Origin: Podarcis erhardii
Taxonomy: Eukaryota
DNA: 64,000 nt
Strand: one strand, 5' to 3'
Assembly: GCA_964252035.1 (NCBI GenBank)
Contig: OZ176201.1
This document shows, piece by piece, positions 3,803 to 63,722 of this stretch (its first letter is position 1; each line of letters begins with the position of its first letter). The translations under genes were made by a program, and so were the position numbers. Under the pieces are notes generated by a model. That model did not search any database and was not told where the DNA came from. It saw only the letters and a program-made list of their open reading frames with translations.

Positions 3803-4969
3803 ATGTTTAACCTGACAGAAGTGACCTTCCTCGGTGATGCCCACACTCGGTTCCAGACTCTAAAGCCTTGGTGGGATGTCCTGATGGACTACTTGGTAGT
3901 AGCGATGCTGATGGTCTCTCTCCTCTCAGGTACTCTGCTGATTTCTATTGACCATATGACCTGCTTGCCTCTGAATTACAAGCTAAATGAGACCACAGCA
4001 GCTATGCTCAAGCCTGGAGCTATGGACAGTGCCACCACCAGGGAAGAGTTTTCTACTGAGAACAGTGGACGCCCAATCAACCTTGACTACCAGCAGTACC
4101 TGTACATAAACCATGTCTGCTATCAGAATGCTTTGCCTTGGTTCTCCAAGTATTTTCCTTACCTAGCACTTGTCAACTCACTGATTTTAATGGCAAGCAG
4201 CAACTTCTGGTTCAGGTACCCTAAGACGTCCTCAAAGATCGAACACTTCTTATCCATCCTCATGAAATGCTTCGAGTCACCTTGGACCATCAAGGCCGTC
4301 TCTGAAATGGTCTGCCAGAATTCCCTAGACCTACCCAAAACCACGGATACTAGAGGGTGTCAAGAACAATTTATTTCCCCTTCATCCTCTCCTATCCTTG
4401 ACTGGAAGGAGAGGGAGCAGGGCCGGGCACTCTTTGAGAAGATCTGCAGATTCAGGGCACATGTTGAAGGTGCCAGCTTGATTTATATGGTCTACATGGG
4501 ACAAACAATCTTCAAAGTTGCCAAGATCCTAACTGTGCTGGGCTACACCTCCAACTGCATAGGAGCCATCTCCTTTGAACATGTTTGCTGGCTGGACACA
4601 GAGAACCTCACCGGCTACTCTGTTTTCCTCTGTAATCACAGCTTGGCTTTCATTCTGCAGAAGTTGATGGTGACCTACCTGTTCTTGGTATTCCTCTATG
4701 GGGTGGTGGGGGCTTACCCACTGGTGTGGCTGCTGCGGCAGCCGCTGCAGAAGTATTCCTTTAAGCAAATGCGAGAAGACAGTCACTTTCTTGGCATCCC
4801 AGATGTCTACAACGACTTTGCTTTCCTCCTGCACATGGCTGATCAGTGCGACCAACTATACTCCTGGCGGTTTGCCATCTTCCTCTCAGCCATGAGCAAG
4901 AGCTCTTTGCTGGATGTGGGCCTTGAACACAAGGCAAGTACTGAAGGGCTGCAGCTGCATGTGCATTGA
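3803..4969 (+). CDS. LRRC8-family volume-regulated anion channel subunit, LRRC8D-like paralogue; pannexin-like TM domain only, LRR domain lost (388 aa)
   Basis: Acceptor TTGCTTCTAG at 3800, ATG at 3803. MFNLTEV..LKPWWDVLMDYL, CYQNALPWFSKYFPYLAL, KCFESPW, AISFEHVC, DFAFLLHM and DQLYS.RF match LRRC8 motifs. The MF.L.EV start, CFESPW, AISFEHVC and DQ.DQLYS are D-type rather than A/C/E-type. The stop at 4967-4969 falls just before the LRRs. Confidence 0.9.
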   Translation: MFNLTEVTFLGDAHTRFQTLKPWWDVLMDYLVVAMLMVSLLSGTLLISIDHMTCLPLNYKLNETTAAMLKPGAMDSATTREEFSTENSGRPINLDYQQYLYINHVCYQNALPWFSKYFPYLALVNSLILMASSNFWFRYPKTSSKIEHFLSILMKCFESPWTIKAVSEMVCQNSLDLPKTTDTRGCQEQFISPSSSPILDWKEREQGRALFEKICRFRAHVEGASLIYMVYMGQTIFKVAKILTVLGYTSNCIGAISFEHVCWLDTENLTGYSVFLCNHSLAFILQKLMVTYLFLVFLYGVVGAYPLVWLLRQPLQKYSFKQMREDSHFLGIPDVYNDFAFLLHMADQCDQLYSWRFAIFLSAMSKSSLLDVGLEHKASTEGLQLHVH

Positions 4970-5245: not shown

Positions 5246-5314
5246 TGTTCAGACCTGTCCTTGTTGGGCTGGGATTATGAATATGGATTTCATATGGATA
5301 TGAATATAGAAGAA

Positions 5315-5497
5315 GGGGTACAGCTCAATAGTTAAGCATGGGCTTTGTATGCAAAAGATCCTGGGTTCAATTGTTGGCATCTCCAGTTAGGGCTAGGAAA
5401 GGCTCCTGTCTGAAACCATGGAGAACTGCAGCCGGTCAGTAATACTGACCTAGACAGATCAATAGTCTGATCCAGTTTAAGGAGCCTCTGATATTCT
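5315..5497 (+). mobile_element. tRNA-derived squamate SINE (Squam2-like)
   Basis: tRNA-like head (AGCTCAATAGTTAAGCATG...CCTGGGTTCAA) followed by GGCATCTCCAGTTAGGGCT...GAGAACTGCAGCCGGTCAG; related copies at ~55385-55510 (+) and ~58373-58530 (-). Confidence 0.7.
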
Positions 5498-8969: not shown

Positions 8970-35766
<26,797 letters not shown>

Positions 35767-56200: not shown

Positions 56201-59200
56201 GCAGCCGCCAGGCACCATCTTGCTTGCCTCCCCATGTCTGCCTCTACCCCACATCCCGTCCTCGGCTTCTGGGAATCACTGCGAAAAGGCACCGGATGCA
56301 CCAGCCGGGGCCGCTCTACCCTGGGACAAGAAGTCCATGTCATCAGCCTGAAGAAGGGATTGCCGGCAAATGGCCAGGTATGAGAGATCCCCATCCATAC
56401 CACCTTCCCATGTATGAGGCTGTATGATGGGTCTTGCTACAGCTCCATTGGATACCCAAACAAGATGGCCGCTCAGCTTGGCACTACAGTTCAAGGTGTC
56501 TCAGTCAGTCAAAAAGGCAAAACTCCATTTCAGTCACTTCTTCACAGTTGTCAGGGCCTCTCTTAAGTCACAGAAGCGTTAGGTTAGCCAAGTTGTGAGA
56601 AGCAAAGAGGAACACTCTTGCGCAGGGCCTGCTTAGTGCTGGGGGTGGGAACATGCCTCACCTGCTGAACATCCAAGGCGGCCGCCTTTGGTGGTATATC
56701 CTACCTTCTCTGGTTCTTTTCCAATCCCTTCTCCATTTCGCTCTTTGATCATGCATGGAGAAGGTACCTGTCCCCTTGATCCTCTTTCAGGTAACTCTGA
56801 TAACTCTGGACCCAGATCCCCACGACAGAGGCCCCATCTTTGTGCTGTATTCCCAAAAGCCTGTGCGCTGGGTGTTGCTGTCTCCCCCTGGAAAAAACTG
56901 GACCTTCCAGGTGAGATGGGATAGAGGGCCAAAGGGCCTAGAGAACATCATGGGGATCACTGAGGGGGTCGTTGGAGCCCCTGCTCTACGCAAGCATAGA
57001 AGATGAGTGGCAGCAATGGGAAGGGTGGATGGAAAAGCTAATTTGCTACCTCCACAGCACTTTTACAAAATACTTTCAGATCTAGCTCTGTTTGTCTTCA
57101 GAAGCATCTTGTGTAGTAAGTTCCTATTCTTCCCATTTTACAGATGGGGGAAATTGAGGCTATGGGAGGCTTGCCTAAGGCCACCCAGTGAATCTGTGGC
57201 TGAAGTGGAATTTAAACCCAGATCTCCCAGATTAAAGTGCAGAACTGTTCTAGTTTAATGCCCTCCCCAGCGTGGGGTGTCAGAGAGGGGGGAGGTTCTC
57301 CAGGCTAGTATATTTTACCTTTGCCTTCCTCCTATCTACAGGTCTCCCCTGGCTCTAATGTTTCAGCCCCGGGGCCAGTGGCCTCTGCTGAGACCAACTT
57401 ACCAAAGACGCCCAAACGCCTGCTGAAGTGGGCACGGAGGGAGCACGGAGGGGTCACCTCTCTGGCTGAATACCGTGGAGTCAACAGAATCTACACACGC
57501 CTGGGGGCTGGCATGGGCAATGAGGGTAGATATCGGCTCTGAGGGAAAGGGTGGCATTATGGCTGTGTGTCCTACAATTCCCCATCCCTGACCACTGGCC
57601 ACCCTGGCTGGGGCTGATTGGAGTTGCAGTCCAGCAACATATGGAGAGACACAGGTTCCCCATTTTCGCTACTGCAGTGTGATAAGCAGGAGGAGGGCAG
57701 GCAGCTGGTCTTTTGGGTCCTGGGCTAATGCAGTAACTTTGCAGAAGTTGTGCAGGTCTGGGTCTGGTCAGTGCTTGGAAGGGAGACCATCCAGGAAGGA
57801 AAGATCTGTGCACTGCAATCATAGAGGGAAGATGGAATATATACACAGCACAGATAAATAAGACTCACCAGTATCAACTGGAGAGCAGTTGCCAAAGAGT
57901 TTGCATTGCTTGCAAAAGAAGAAGAGTAAATCGCAGCAGCTCTTCTGTGACCATTCAGTCCAGATGCTTCATTCCTTTCCTTCTCCAGATAGGATTGCCC
58001 CAGCCACTTGCAGATTAAGTAGGAATTTCCTGACCCCAGTGCACTTTGCCTCCAAGTGCCAACTCCAGCCTCTGAGAGTTTGCCTGCATCCTGACCCTCC
58101 GCAAGTCCTTGAAGTTCACATCATCCTCTCCAAAGGAGTTGCACCAAGGTGCGTGCCAGGGAGGCATCGCCAGATGCGGCTGCTGAACCGGGGGGGGGGG
58201 GGAGCAGGGGGTTGGCAAAATGTTCATAACGAGATGCCGTGTCTTGAACAGGGAGGTTGAAATTGTTCTTAGTGTAGATGGGGAAGGGGGATGGTGAGGA
58301 AGAATGAAACCTATGCAAGAAGCTGTCTATGATAAGTGACCCTTGTGTTGAAATGGATAAGATGTAATAAACAGGAACATGGAAGCTGGTTCATCTAGCC
58401 TGGTACTGCTGACACAGACTGGCAGCAGATCTCCCATGTCTTTCTCAGCTCTGTCTGGAGATGATGGGGATCGAATCTCTGACCTTCTGCATGCAGAGCA
58501 GTTGCCCTGCCACTTAGCTACGGCACTTCCCCCGAAAGTCAAGGCCAGATGGACACTGAGCCAAAAACGAGTAGCGACAGTGGCTAGTATTAGGCCTTGA
58601 ATATTGGGCAGGGATCTCTGAGTTGGGGGACGGGTGGCGTGGGGCTTCACTGGCTTCCATCATGTGCTTAATCCTGTTGTGGGGGGGCAGCCTGCTCTCT
58701 TCTAGGCCCACCCTGGCTCATTTGACCGTGGAACTTCATGCTGTCCGAAGGCCCCCCCACTGGGGACTGATCTTGATACTGAAGAGTGAGGGAGCTGCTG
58801 AGTGGATGGTTCACACCCACCGCCTCACTGGCCGGCTGCATGTACTGGTAGGGGCAGGACCTGCTCTGGGTATAGATCTGTAACGCTCTAGGCCAGCTAA
58901 TACTCTTCTCTCTCTCTCCCCCTCCCCAAGTTGGTGGCAGTGGCACACATCTGGAAGGGAGCAGGGCACACATGTGCTCAAAGCCAGACACAGTGGTACT
59001 TCAGGTTACAGACGCTTCAGGTTACAGACTCTTCAGGTTCCAGACTCCGCTAACCCAGAAATAGTACCTCAGGTTAAGAACTTTGCTTCAGGATGAGAAC
59101 AGAAATCATGCGATGGCGGCGTGGCGGCAGTGGGAGGCCCCATTAGCTAAAATGGTACCTCAGGTTAAGAACAGTTTCAGGTTAAGAACGGACCTCCGGA

Positions 59201-62200
59201 ACGAATTAAGTTCTTAACCTGAGGTACCCCTGTATAGCCAAGTGTGTCATCAACATCAGTACAAAACTGGGTGGGATTTATTCCTTAATTAACCTGAGGT
59301 ACCACTGTAGATGCATTATGCAGAATTGTAACCTTTCCTAGTGGAAGCAGTTTGGTTGGCTTCATGCTATTATAAGGGTTATATTATGGAGGGTTCATTC
59401 TGCTAACTCCTGCCTTCACAGGCCCACTAGTGAGCTTTACCAACCCTCTTCCATAAGCTTCCCCTGCATTCTCCCTATAACTCTAGGTTTGCCTCCTCCT
59501 CCTCCAGCCTTATTTTTTTTTTGCTAAAGTGAGCCAAGGAGTCTTACTTCCTGGCTCCAACTCTCCACCCCACTAGGCTACTCCCTCTTGGGAGTCTGTC
59601 TCCATGCTGCCATTTGATTCCCTTGGACCGTCTCTTGTTTATGGTGTGCCTGTTGCTGCTGCTCTCCATGTCTGGGCCTTGTATTGTAACTCAGGCTGGG
59701 ATTCCTTTCTAGGCTTCGCACAAAGTCACAGTCAGCAGCACAGAAATGGATCTGCCTCTGACTGTGACCCAGCGGACGTCCCCTCGGCTGATGACCCTCG
59801 ACCCTTTGCAGTTTGCAACGGAGCAGAATCTGCCTGCCTTTACATCCTACGTTGAGGCTGAGCGGGTGAACAGGTTTCTCCTTTTTGTTGGGACGAATGG
59901 TAGGTTTGGAGGGATTCAATGGACATGAATGGGAAAAGTGCCCACCAGAGAGCTTAGAGGCAAACCACTAGTGACCGCTGCAGTAGATTCCTGGCATTTA
60001 TATTCCAGTTCCTCCTGCACCATTTTACCCTAGGGTATACAACCTCAGTTTTATTTTAGGAATGCACCAAATCAAAACATTTTCAGCATGAAAAGTATGC
60101 TTCCAAGGGGGCTGAAATGATACACACCCAGCCAAAGCATATATTTTGGTGCTTGTTAACATATTTTGCTGCTTCAGTGCCATTTTCCCAAACCCTTTTG
60201 AGAGCTTATTTCCTAGTCGTTATGTGATCCCAGCCAATCAGGATTCACGTAGGGATGATAAATGGTGTCAAATAAGCAATCAGCTGTGGCTACAATGGTA
60301 AAATCAAGAAGGGCAAATGAAACTGCATTGCATTCTGAATGCTGAGCCCGTGGAAGAGAACAGGAAGGCGTGCCATATTATGTCAGAATGTGCAGACCTT
60401 TCACTTAGGTAACAGAAGGAATAGATACAGGGTTGCCAACATTCTTGGGCCCATGGGTAAGTCTGCAACAGAGAAATTATTGTGAGTCCCCTCCCCTCCT
60501 CTCCTGCAAACTATTCTATGGGCTCCAATAGAATGCTTCTTCTGAGCCTAATTTCAGTGCTGGGAGGGGAGGCTAGCTTGCAGACTGCAGAGAAGGCCTC
60601 TGTGAGCTGGGCACATGTGTCCTTTGGGGCCACACTGGTGATGCTTGGAAGAGATCATATTCTGATTAACAGCAGCAGTGTATAAGGCATATGATTGCAT
60701 CACACCCACACACCTGTATTTCCTTTGTAGGGGCCACACCTCCTCTAGAAGAGCCAACACTCTTTTGGCCCGTATTTCTGCATCCTCCCAGTTTCACAGC
60801 CTCTCAACAGGACTTTGCAGAAGCCAACACAGCTGGCTGGGAGGTGACAAGGCAGGACTTTGGGGGAGAGGATGGTTCCGTTACCTACCCACCGTCTACA
60901 GCCAAAGCAGAGGGGACAGAATCTATCTTGTGTCTTGGGGACCATAAGCCTGTTCTTGAAAACCAGGACACTCAGAGAGTGAGTAGCCAAGGATGGCATC
61001 TCCAGATGGACAGAGGGAATCTATTTCCTACAGTGCCATTTCATGTGGGTGTGGATGGGTGGGTATTGTCTTGCCGTTGTACATCAATACCGCTCCACAG
61101 ACCTGTTTTTCTCCTGCAGGTCTCCTGTGTTTCACCTTCTCCAACCCAGATATCTCCCTCAGAAGCCGCAACGGCCTTCCAGGATCCCCACCTTCACCTT
61201 GGCAATGCCCTCATTAACCTAGAGCTCTACAACACAGAGGCTTTTGCCAAGCAACTTGGACCTTTTGTCGTCTCAGCCAACAGCCTTGTCTTTGTGGAGG
61301 TAAAGCGGACGATGAATATACAAGAGCTGGCATTGGACGCAGCAGTTACACGCCAGAATCTTGTCCCTAAGTGATTCCTCCTCTGTCCAGAGATCTGGTG
61401 GTTTGCAGCACTCCCTGTCTCTCTCAGAGCCTCAAACAGGGCAGTTGACCTGCTTGTTGCTTTATGGGGGGGTGATAAACTTACACTGTAGCTCTCAAAG
61501 GGACGAAGTAACAGGGGTGATTTGCCATCACGTTTTACCAGCTTAGAAGGGCAACGTGCATCCCAGGGAAGGTCATGATTTTGTAAGCAAAACAGCAAGG
61601 AATAGACTTAGCAGATTTCATACTGCGGCCCAATTCAAGGTCCAACTTTATGGTTGGTTGGCAATGAAAAAATAGGTATAAAAAGACAATTCCTGGATGC
61701 CAAGAGCCAAGTTTGGGGCAAGTATTCTTTGGTGAGAGAACCCCAGCAGAAATTTAAAACAACAAACATCTAGCAAAGAAAAGCATGGAAATATAGGTTG
61801 TTATTCTTAGAATATGTCTTTCTAAGTTCCTTCCAAAATTCCCCTCTTCTCCTGGCACAGAAAATACCATGTGTGTGGCAAGTTCAAAATGGTTTACTTA
61901 CAGACTCTCCAATGATCAGATTCATGTGCTTTTCAGTGCAGCATTCAGAAAACGTTGGCAGCAAAACTGGCAGTTGTCTTTGCAGATGGTGTTTCCTTTT
62001 TCCTCCAGGCTTCCTTGGCAACCTATGACTCGTCTCTCAGCTTCACCATCCAGAAGTGCTTCATCTCTAGCTCCTCAGATGCTTCAGAGGCCTCAGTGTA
62101 TCTCCTGGTCCAGCATGGCTGTCCTGTGGCCGCCGCCCAAGTCAGGCTGTGGAAACCTGAGCTGCCAGGCCAGGCCCAGGCGTTGCCTCTGGGGTACCAG

Positions 62201-63722
62201 GAACGCCAGCGACTGAGCTTTGTGTTGAAGCCACAGTCCAATGCCTCCATCCACTTCTTGCACTGCCATCTGACGCTCTGCAGCAGGGGGTCTCAGGACT
62301 CCGTCAGACCCAAGGGCGCAATCCCCAAGGTCTCTGGCTCCCTGGGCTAGGGAACCCTGTCTTCTAGCAGCTATCTGAGGGCCTGATAGCGCTACTGCTT
62401 CAGAATAGGCTCTCCTGATTGGGGATGCTTATGGAGGAAACTGATATGCCACTGCAAGCTCTCCACTTGGCCCAGAGGTAGCCAAAATGGTGCCCTCTGC
62501 TCAATGAGGATGCTGGCTTCCCAATTCCCAGCACCTCAGCTAGCATGGCCATTGGCCAGGGGTGATGAAAATTGTAGTCAATTGGTATCTAGGGGGGGCA
62601 CCATGTTGGTTACCCCTTAGCTTATTATTATTGCCTCCTCTGAACAGCAATATCTCTCAAGTGTTTCAAGCAGAGGTCTTTCCTTTGATGTTTGACTGGG
62701 GGTTGAATGGGGGCCCCTCTGTGTGCTTTGCCCCTCAGCTATGACTGGCCCCTTCCAGAAATCCTTGGACCATCTCTGCTCTGAGGGTGGAAGGGGTGGT
62801 GCCTAAGAAAAGATGGAATAAAGAGGAAAGCGAAACCCCTTGGAGGGGTGAAAACCCTCTGGAATGGGTCTGTGCAAAAGAGCCCCCCAGTTAGCTGTAG
62901 AAATGAGCTGGCTGGGCTTATGGAGAAGCAGGTGGGATATAACTGGGCCAAGGCCTACCTCCCACTGTTGGGATGAGGCACTCTTCTGAGGCAGGTTTTT
63001 GTTTCAGTGTCAGTCTGAGAAGGAGGCCTGCAGGGGAGAAGAGGAGGCGGTCCCAAGCCGCTTCCAGCGCACCATCACAAAGCCTATGCTAGTGACTGTG
63101 GAGACTCCGCTCCGAGCTGCCTCTCCTGGCCCAAAACCAGGTACTTTCCTGTGGGTTCTAGATAGCAGCCAGGAGAGAGCAGTTGGCTTGAAGGCCTTGC
63201 AGTTCAGCACCCTGGCTCCATGCTGGAGAAAACTGTCCTGCAGAGTGAGTGAGGAACTGAAAGAAACTGATGGGGGAGTCCTGCTTGCTGGGGAGATGGA
63301 AGTGTCTCCTTGTGCATCTCTCCAGAGCAGAGGTGGTGGACCTGTAGCCCTCTAGATATTCTTGGACTCCAGCTCCCATCACCTCAAGCCATCATGGCCA
63401 ATGGCAAGGGATAATGGGGCTTGTAGTTCACCAGCATCTCCTACCCAGGAGATTGATGCCTTGGATCTCACCATGCTACAAGCCCAGACTTTGCCAATGG
63501 CATGTTCATCCTGAGTGAAGCAAAGTAGCAATGATGGGCAGTTATGCACTCATTTCTTTTCTCCCCCTTGCCACCCGGAGGCTATTTTCTTCAGACACTC
63601 CCTCAGATTATCTGTTCCTTCCTTGACTTTGGTGTCTTTTTCTGCAGCTAAGGTCCCAGACAAACAACAAGGAAAAGCACCAAAGGATGCAGCCCACAAG
63701 CGGAAGACTCAGGTAGTCCGAA
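53135..63722 (+). CDS. TGFBR3L: TGF-beta receptor type 3-like protein (betaglycan paralogue), first 12 coding exons (~669 aa); TM and cytoplasmic exons lie beyond the window
   Basis: Twelve phase-compatible exons colinear with TGFBR3 exons. ZP-C motifs GPFVVSANSLVFVEASLA, NASIHFLHCHLTLC, CQSEKEAC and TITKPMLVTV are closer to mammalian TGFBR3L than to TGFBR3 as recalled. Position directly downstream of MAP2K7 matches TGFBR3L. Confidence 0.85.
53586..53971 (+). mobile_element. Sauria SINE (full length, older subfamily)
   Basis: GGGACGTGGGTGGTGCTGTGGTCTAAACC head, (CCTTTA)n tail, 12-bp TSD TACTAGGGGTTT (53572-53583 / 53969-53980). Confidence 0.92.
54482..54838 (+). mobile_element. Sauria SINE (full length, lacertid-type)
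   Basis: GGGACGTGGGTGGCGCTGTGGGTTAAACC head with A/B boxes, GGGGTCCCTTTACCTTTACCTTTAC tail, 11-bp TSD TACAGCTCTCT (54469-54479 / 54837-54847). Confidence 0.95.
56205..56377 (+). CDS. TGFBR3L: TGFBR3L coding exon 2 (orphan domain)
   Basis: AARHHLACLPMSASTPHPVLGFWESLRKGTGCTSRGRSTLGQEVHVISL..., matching TGFBR3 LCELSPVSASHPV..SGCASRG..QEVHVLNL. Confidence 0.9.
56791..56910 (+). CDS. TGFBR3L: TGFBR3L coding exon 3 (orphan domain)
   Basis: VTLITLDPDPHDRGPIFVLYSQKPVRWVLLSPPGKNWTFQ, matching TGFBR3 VTLHL..VVFLLNSPHPLVW; phase 0-0. Confidence 0.85.
57055..57240 (-). mobile_element. MIR-like SINE
   Basis: CCCATTTTACAGATGGGGGAAATTGAGGCT...TTGCCTAAGGCCACCCAG, the inverted MIR core. Confidence 0.65.
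57342..57525 (+). CDS. TGFBR3L: TGFBR3L coding exon 4 (orphan domain); alternative GC donor would end it at 57510
   Basis: VSPGSNV...LLKWARREHGGVTSLAEYRGVNRIYTRLG, matching TGFBR3 VSEGSVV...LLNWARKEYGAVTSFTELKIARNIYIKVG. Confidence 0.85.
57989..58148 (+). CDS. TGFBR3L: TGFBR3L coding exon 5 (orphan domain)
   Basis: DRIAPATCRLSRNFLTPVHFASKCQLQPLRVC...EVHIIL, matching TGFBR3 DQVFPPKCNIGKNFLSLNY...GC...EVHIIEL. Confidence 0.9.
58706..58847 (+). CDS. TGFBR3L: TGFBR3L coding exon 6 (orphan domain)
   Basis: PTLAHLTVELHAVRRPPHWGLILILKSEGAAEWMVHTHRLTGRLHVL, matching TGFBR3 NLILILKCKKSVNWVIKSFDVKGSLKII. Confidence 0.88.
58991..59232. mobile_element. Tigger/pogo-like MITE
   Basis: TIR CAGTGGTACTTCAGGTTA / TTAACCTGAGGTACCCCTG followed by TA; internal CTTCAGGTTACAGAC repeats; extra right TIR at ~59289-59307. 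Confidence 0.8.
59713..59899 (+). CDS. TGFBR3L: TGFBR3L coding exon 7 (end of orphan domain)
   Basis: ASHKVTVSS...FTSYVEAERVNRFLLFVGTN, matching TGFBR3 APNSIGF...ITSYTMAPVANRFHLRL; phase 0-1. Confidence 0.85.
60731..60978 (+). CDS. TGFBR3L: TGFBR3L coding exon 8 (linker plus first ZP-N strand)
   Basis: Phase-1 acceptor TTTGTAG; GATPPLEEP...ESILCLGDHKPVLENQDTQR; donor AGA|GTGAGT, phase 0. Confidence 0.7.
61120..61299 (+). CDS. TGFBR3L: TGFBR3L coding exon 9 (start of ZP-C)
   Basis: VSC...GNALINLELYNTEAFAKQLGPFVVSANSLVFVE, matching TGFBR3 FNC...GNITFNMELYNTDLF...VYVE. Confidence 0.9.
62009..62329 (+). CDS. TGFBR3L: TGFBR3L coding exon 10 (ZP-C core)
   Basis: ASLATYDSSLSFTIQKCFIS...HGCP...LSFVLKPQSNASIHFLHCHLTLC...IPK; donor AAG|GTCTCT is weak. 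Confidence 0.88.
62472..62618. mobile_element. Short hAT-type palindromic MITE
   Basis: CAGAGGTAGCCAAAATGGTGCCC ... GGGCACCATGTTGGTTACCCC inverted termini. Confidence 0.6.
63008..63140 (+). CDS. TGFBR3L: TGFBR3L coding exon 11 (end of ZP-C / external hydrophobic patch)
   Basis: CQSEKEACRG...RTITKPMLVTVETP; donor CAG|GTACTT, phase 1. Confidence 0.88.
63648..63722 (+). CDS. TGFBR3L: TGFBR3L coding exon 12 (75 nt, juxtamembrane, phase 1-1)
   Basis: TTTTTCTGCAG acceptor; AKVPDKQQGKAPKDAAHKRKTQVVR; donor A|GTAAGT at 63723. Confidence 0.6.

Follow-up and report, generated by a model that had tools for sequence, protein, structure and literature searches.

A TGFBR3L gene in Podarcis erhardii that lacks the two exons of the ZP-N core

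Receptors of the betaglycan family consist of an orphan domain, a ZP-N domain and a ZP-C domain, and structural work on them leaves the role of ZP-N open. A stretch of 64,000 nucleotides (nt) from the lizard Podarcis erhardii (assembly GCA_964252035.1, contig OZ176201.1), here called the window, carries on its + strand a member of this family, TGFBR3L, in which a single intron of 141 nt occupies the place of the ZP-N core. This raises the question whether ZP-N has truly been lost from the gene, what exactly was removed, in which lineages, and what became of the parts left behind. An earlier note, written from the letters of the window alone, had read the locus as a clean, in-frame absence of two phase-0 exons holding the second and third ZP-N cysteines; its coordinates and frames agree with the sequence and the translations, and comparison with turtle and bowfin exon maps bears out the absence itself. 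We consider it likely that the gene is a TGFBR3L from which the two ZP-N core exons have been lost, with orphan domain and ZP-C now joined by a flexible tether.

The exons missing between linker and ZP-C

The junction is made up of the following features of the window, each given with the evidence on which it rests.

60731..60978, + strand: linker exon (translation, alignment to turtle strand A, spliced contigs)
60931..60933, + strand: TGT codon of Cys1, the Cys of SILC, homologous to ZP-N Cys1 (translation, alignment)
60979..61119, + strand: GT..AG intron of 141 nt (skipped in contigs of four runs)
61120..61299, + strand: Cys4 exon, 180 nt (translation, structure alignment, exon-start match)
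61126..61128, + strand: TGT codon of Cys4, homologous to ZP-N Cys4 (translation, alignment)

The linker exon, whose frame is open from 60733, encodes ~64 poorly conserved tether residues and then a vestige of ZP-N strand A with Cys1, and it ends in phase 0 (..TQR) directly before a GTGAGT donor. Beyond the intron, the 3' end of which is a pyrimidine tract followed by CAG, the Cys4 exon encodes the end of ZP-N strand G (VSC, with Cys4), a short spacer and the first ZP-C strand; it likewise ends in phase 0, and in alignment its second half corresponds to where the betaglycan ZP-C structures 8DC0, 3QW9 and 7LBG begin. In TGFBR3L of the turtle Malaclemys (locus L001), two phase-0 exons stand at this junction (4480-4641, 162 nt, and 5305-5394, 90 nt), which together encode 84 residues and hold Cys2 and Cys3. 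The relative in the bowfin Amia (locus L007) has core exons of 144 nt and 90 nt, arranged on the same plan and between the same flanking boundaries, and because Amia shares the turtle plan this exon plan must be old. The turtle linker exon ends 15 residues past Cys1, at the same residue as the lizard exon, and the 15 residues after lizard Cys1 align with turtle ZP-N strand A; on the other side, lizard Cys4 lies two residues into its exon (VSC), matching turtle FSC and betaglycan FNC, and ~20-22 residues before the HLG with which ZP-C starts. The strand A alignment and the matching exon ends and starts identify the two remaining cysteines as Cys1 and Cys4 of ZP-N, as had been proposed. The lizard gene is without exactly these two core exons, and nothing else is gone.

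Spliced contigs confirmed the direct junction. The join 60978 -> 61120 (GT..AG) was found in one contig each from four public runs, which come from four studies and two related organisms, with 178 letters on the shorter side of the join. Each of these contigs contains the linker exon, then the 180-nt exon, then the ZP-C exon (joined at ~61299 -> 62009). Contigs also show joints at 62329 -> 63008 and from 63140 onward, and none from the four runs retains the 141-nt intron. Clean joints in a chain, together with run-on into neighbouring introns, fit complementary DNA rather than a retrocopy, and the gene is transcribed with its linker and Cys4 exons joined directly. An open frame of 227 codons (window 60691-61374) crosses the intron, retention of which would add 47 residues with two Cys. 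We rejected the intron as hidden coding sequence, since it is spliced out in all contigs and its equivalent in Podarcis muralis, also 141 nt long, has an in-frame stop; its openness in the window is a matter of chance. Two intronic stretches, 61685-61960 and 63350-63490, stand out in each of the four runs through a very high summed depth of contigs and numerous loose ends, a pattern as expected for interspersed repeats.

Nor was any trace of the missing exons found elsewhere in the loci searched. When five ZP-N cores were compared by tblastn with the window and the Tiliqua locus, only chance-level matches were returned: window 34482-34550 (E 0.023) is flanked by stops and was rejected as a ZP-N remnant, and Tiliqua (locus L002) 11386-11460 (E 0.49), although inside the right intron, was rejected as chance level. 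A profile of eight ZP-N cores run over both strands of six loci revealed no remnant either (best E 1.2), the intron matches being at background. Neither the exons of the window nor the squamate models gave a match to the ZP-N family PF23344, a fold with four Cys paired C1-C4 and C2-C3, in line with the expected product of an orphan domain plus ZP-C without ZP-N.

The deletion had also been credited with removing glycosaminoglycan (GAG) attachment sites, a claim that the relatives do not bear out. A betaglycan fragment of mammal or bird type has two Ser-Gly in the stretch before FNC, and a betaglycan-like Ser-Gly motif, present in true betaglycan, is kept by coelacanth alone among the TGFBR3L compared; the second core exon of turtle, lungfish and caecilian TGFBR3L contains no Ser-Gly, so the deletion probably removed none. 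In the window, the exon for the GAG loop is absent and no Ser-Gly occurs in the exon translations read. The protein is probably not a proteoglycan, though not owing to this deletion. Just past the C-x6-C of ZP-C, the Podarcis muralis protein (P0098, residue 658) has a Ser-Gly with three Glu, a possible GAG-type site, where the window has Arg-Gly (63026-63034).

The remainder of the gene within the window comprises three further features.

59713..59898, + strand: last exon of the orphan domain, betaglycan-like (tblastn; boundaries approximate)
62009..62329, + strand: ZP-C core exon, 107 codons, phase 0 at both ends (Pfam, structure, contigs)
63008..63140, + strand: ZP-C end exon, C-x6-C pair plus final strand (sequence, tblastn, contig joints)

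That the gene is TGFBR3L is established by the ZP-C Pfam match, by structure matches and by an ortholog tree. The ZP-C core exon holds four of the six conserved ZP-C Cys and matches PF00100 (E 1.2e-08), and betaglycan ZP-C structures are its top matches among solved structures (4AJV, E 8e-13); the linker exon alone had no match in Pfam or solved-structure searches. By tblastn, the orphan exons at 56.2-59.9 kilobases (kb) of the window match squamate and turtle orthologs, with 51-73% identity to Tiliqua, Terrapene and Sphenodon TGFBR3L for the last of them, whose equivalent on the Podarcis muralis exon map measures 189 nt. The transmembrane exon lies beyond the window end (64000), and Podarcis muralis and other orthologs have the helix. 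Searched against 1.84 billion representative proteins, the ZP-C exon matched reptile TGFBR3-like proteins, TGFBR3L of turtle, lungfish, coelacanth, caecilian and marsupial, and TGFBR3 of fish and frog. The nearest full-length proteins are those of Podarcis muralis (86.7% identity to the window over tblastn matches) and Zootoca (80.4%). Window exons were searched singly, with the Podarcis muralis database protein as a whole-protein proxy for fold and tree. A maximum-likelihood tree for the ZP-C region, built with this ortholog (P0098) and not with a joined window model, unites squamates, tuatara, turtles, caecilian and marsupials in a single clade (support 99/97) and puts true TGFBR3 in a separate one (support 100/100).

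In the turtle Malaclemys, the orphan exon that matches window 57336-57527 (locus L001, 1664-1855) sits in a neighbouring gene model with a protein kinase domain. This neighbour is probably a fusion of kinase and orphan exons, and synteny via the turtle upstream gene was uninformative for that reason; the N-terminus of the turtle TGFBR3L model (P0061) is cut short.

Distribution of the architecture among lineages

A word-based protein search with the skink (Tiliqua) sequence as query listed models from 23 squamate species, namely geckos, skink, cordylid, anguid, monitor, amphisbaenian, agamids, iguanids, lacertids, boas, pythons, colubrids, elapid and viper. All 23 have the orphan domain (PF26060, taken from precomputed annotation) and ZP-C (PF00100) and never ZP-N, while most turtle models carry all three domains. 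Pfam scans supported this division: PF23344 scores in TGFBR3L of turtle, lungfish, coelacanth and caecilian as well as in TGFBR3, and does not in the skink, Podarcis muralis and tuatara models. At the DNA level, the direct junction was seen in five further squamates, with introns of widely differing length.

Podarcis muralis: 141 nt
Heteronotia: 531 nt
Candoia: ~1.4 kb
Elgaria: ~1.5 kb
Tiliqua: ~1.8 kb

Mapped in this way, the sequences place the loss of the core exons before the squamate radiation, and the tuatara model suggests that it may have occurred at the lepidosaur stem. Birds and crocodilians lay outside this survey, and their absence from the match lists is uninformative.

Turtles also offer a possible precedent for the squamate junction. 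In the predicted isoforms X7 of Trachemys and one of Mauremys, strand A is joined directly to the Cys4 exon, as in squamates; Trachemys X1 and X7 differ by 84 residues, and X6 skips the first core exon only. If these isoforms are real, exon skipping would have preceded the genomic loss.

Other lineages have lost other parts. The caecilian model has ZP-N and ZP-C without the orphan part, and in wombat the alignment to the turtle protein begins with Cys18 opposite turtle Cys4 (E 2e-10), at the same exon border. The lizard architecture had been taken for an intermediate in stepwise domain loss, yet the full plan survives in turtles, closer kin of lizards than mammals are. The truncation seen in mammals and the loss in lepidosaurs therefore happened separately. 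The lizard form does differ, as the earlier note had it, both from betaglycan, which has ZP-N, and from marsupial TGFBR3L, which is without orphan domain and ZP-N; it is, however, not a state specific to this lizard.

The two cysteines left behind

With Cys2 and Cys3 gone, the fate of Cys1 and Cys4 bears on how the deletion was accommodated. Both are present in lacertids, including the window, and in Rhineura, Tiliqua, Hemicordylus, Pogona and six geckos. Of the 23 squamate species, 21 retain Cys1; nine of the 21 have lost Cys4 (Elgaria, Varanus, six snakes and Sceloporus), and in two Anolis species both residues are replaced. The loss of Cys4 was confirmed in the DNA of Elgaria and Candoia, where its codon carries a mutation and splicing uses an acceptor 30-33 nt further downstream, at the AG within the ancestral ACC CAG codons (Elgaria, locus L004, ~10876-10908; Candoia, locus L003, ~13690-13722), the old exon start now being intron.

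A first explanation holds that the deletion was tolerated because Cys1 and Cys4 still bond, closing a 19-residue loop, and that this bridge is selected and functional. ZP-N normally pairs C1 with C4 (PMC5464963), both residues persist in the groups just listed, the two Anolis species have replaced them together, and in the window lacertid the number of Cys from Cys1 to the membrane is even (Cys1, Cys4 and six of ZP-C). The disulfide parity that had been claimed thus stands in this lacertid, but it does not extend across squamates, given the nine species with Cys1 alone. The segment is, moreover, conserved no better than its surroundings: conservation is 0.65 for the strand A vestige and 0.62 for the start of the Cys4 exon, against 0.62 for the rest of the linker, 0.78 for the orphan domain and 0.80-0.86 for ZP-C, whose six Cys are invariant among squamate models. 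An AlphaFold2 model of the part of the Podarcis muralis protein between orphan domain and membrane, made with 23 aligned orthologs, likewise shows no ordered structure here; the predicted local distance difference test (pLDDT) is below 50 at residues 1-118, the two Cys among them, before an ordered ZP-C sandwich begins. A Cys1-Cys4 loop in this lacertid is possible, but a conserved bridge, or selection on one, is unsupported, and as an account of why the deletion was tolerated we find the bridge doubtful.

The more frequent retention of Cys1 allows a different proposal, in which Cys1 is a free thiol linking two receptor chains, or the receptor and another partner, with Cys4 incidental. Endoglin dimerises via an unpaired Cys (PMC5464963), and the nine species that have Cys1 without Cys4 have an odd Cys count in this region. 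On the other hand, Cys4 is available as a partner in lacertids and geckos, the two Anolis species do without Cys1, and models disagree on how many Cys the orphan part has, which makes parity arguments weak; we regard the free thiol as improbable. A broader scenario, in which the ancestral reptile could already skip the two core exons as cassettes, lepidosaurs fixed the skipped form as the sole one and erased the exons, and Cys1 came to serve as a free thiol that pairs chains covalently in a dimeric, ZP-N-less receptor, is in our judgement unlikely.

In most squamates, the first ZP-C strand (GPC) and the strand after it (DLC) each contain an additional Cys. Lacertids have lost both, the window having Phe at 61264-61266 and Ser at 62033-62035, which hints at a squamate-specific disulfide between the two; turtles, caecilian and marsupials have the first only.

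A betaglycan-family receptor without ZP-N

In the series of events that we favour, two symmetrical phase-0 exons, covering ZP-N strands B-G, were removed in a squamate, probably a lepidosaur, ancestor, and the frame closed cleanly because the flanking exons end and start in phase 0. Cys2 and Cys3 went with them, as did the loop that in betaglycan bears the GAG chains. The vestiges of ZP-N now sit in a tether of ~108 residues, probably flexible, that leads from the orphan domain to ZP-C, and the protein would still be a membrane co-receptor for TGF-beta-family ligands via ZP-C and perhaps the orphan domain. In betaglycan, ZP-N is not involved in ligand binding, and a disordered linker of 85 residues lies between the orphan and ZP parts (PMC11865472); because ZP-N takes no part in binding there, its loss would shorten and simplify the tether and leave the binding modules untouched.

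Several points speak against this account: (i) the type of the four runs was guessed as RNA, from the clean GT..AG joints and from partial intron retention elsewhere; (ii) the contigs come from related organisms, ~2-5% different, and not certainly from the window's own species; (iii) tuatara is represented by a single automated protein model, so that the loss may go back no further than the squamate stem; (iv) the skipped turtle isoforms are predicted ones; (v) low pLDDT is no proof of disorder; (vi) between the window and Podarcis muralis (locus L006), 17 replacement and 12 silent codon changes were counted over three exons (60733-60978, 61120-61299 and 62009-62329), and parts of the protein may thus be under weak constraint. 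Exon divergence between the same two sequences is 2-6%, close to the 4% of the intron, which suggests fast protein evolution.

The near equality of replacement and silent changes, like the poor conservation of the linker, would also be expected if the gene were decaying in lizards and the exon loss were a step in pseudogenisation. The frames are intact, however, in 23 species across the squamate tree, ZP-C and the orphan domain are conserved at 0.78-0.86, none of the six ZP-C Cys has been lost, and the transcripts are correctly spliced, so that we consider decay very unlikely. That the gap is an artefact, through a collapsed assembly or through ZP-N exons located at another place and included in the main transcript, is next to negligible: the sole hint was the open frame of the intron in the window, against which stand the same junction in six independent assemblies, contigs from four studies that skip exactly 141 nt, the in-frame stop in Podarcis muralis and the want of ZP-N core similarity in the window and five other loci, and the misassembly that the earlier note had named as a way to overturn its reading did not materialise.

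Among the known receptors, betaglycan (TGFBR3) has in common with the lizard protein the orphan domain, a disordered linker, a ZP-C with the same six Cys, the transmembrane tail and the exon boundaries round ZP-N; it differs in its full ZP-N with four Cys and in the two Ser-Gly GAG sites in an exon missing in the lizard, whose gene falls in the TGFBR3L clade and not in that of TGFBR3. Mammalian TGFBR3L belongs to the orthologous clade, has ZP-C and is without ZP-N, the marsupial protein starting at the same exon, but it also lacks three parts that the lizard keeps: orphan domain, linker and strand A vestige. It binds inhibin B with its single ZP domain, and inhibin B binding and gonadotrope expression are known only in mouse and human (PMC8673766). 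Full-length turtle TGFBR3L represents the ancestral exon plan, and its predicted skipped isoforms share the squamate junction; turtles, however, retain both exons in their DNA and in most models, whereas in squamates they are gone without trace. Endoglin, which we compared by literature only, is likewise a co-receptor with an orphan region, a ZP module and dimerisation through an unpaired Cys, but has a complete ZP-N packed against ZP-C (PMC5464963).

The lizard gene is not a new kind of system but a variant of a known receptor, shared across squamates and probably across lepidosaurs. The protein models are already public, and the pattern stands unremarked in their domain lists; among the papers searched, none deals with the architecture of non-mammalian TGFBR3L, and the sole reptile paper that names the gene does so in a list of differentially expressed genes.

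Turtles with all modules, the caecilian model with ZP-N and ZP-C, mammals with ZP-C and squamates with orphan domain and ZP-C indicate that lineages have trimmed different modules of this receptor at the same exon borders. Squamates amount to a natural experiment on ZP-N, in that both ligand-binding modules have been kept and the ZP-N core has been lost for well over 100 million years (an estimate from the span of the squamate tree). Their receptor is a ready construct for the role of ZP-N and of tether length in ligand capture and hand-off, and it raises the question whether inhibin feedback in reptiles is wired as in mammals.

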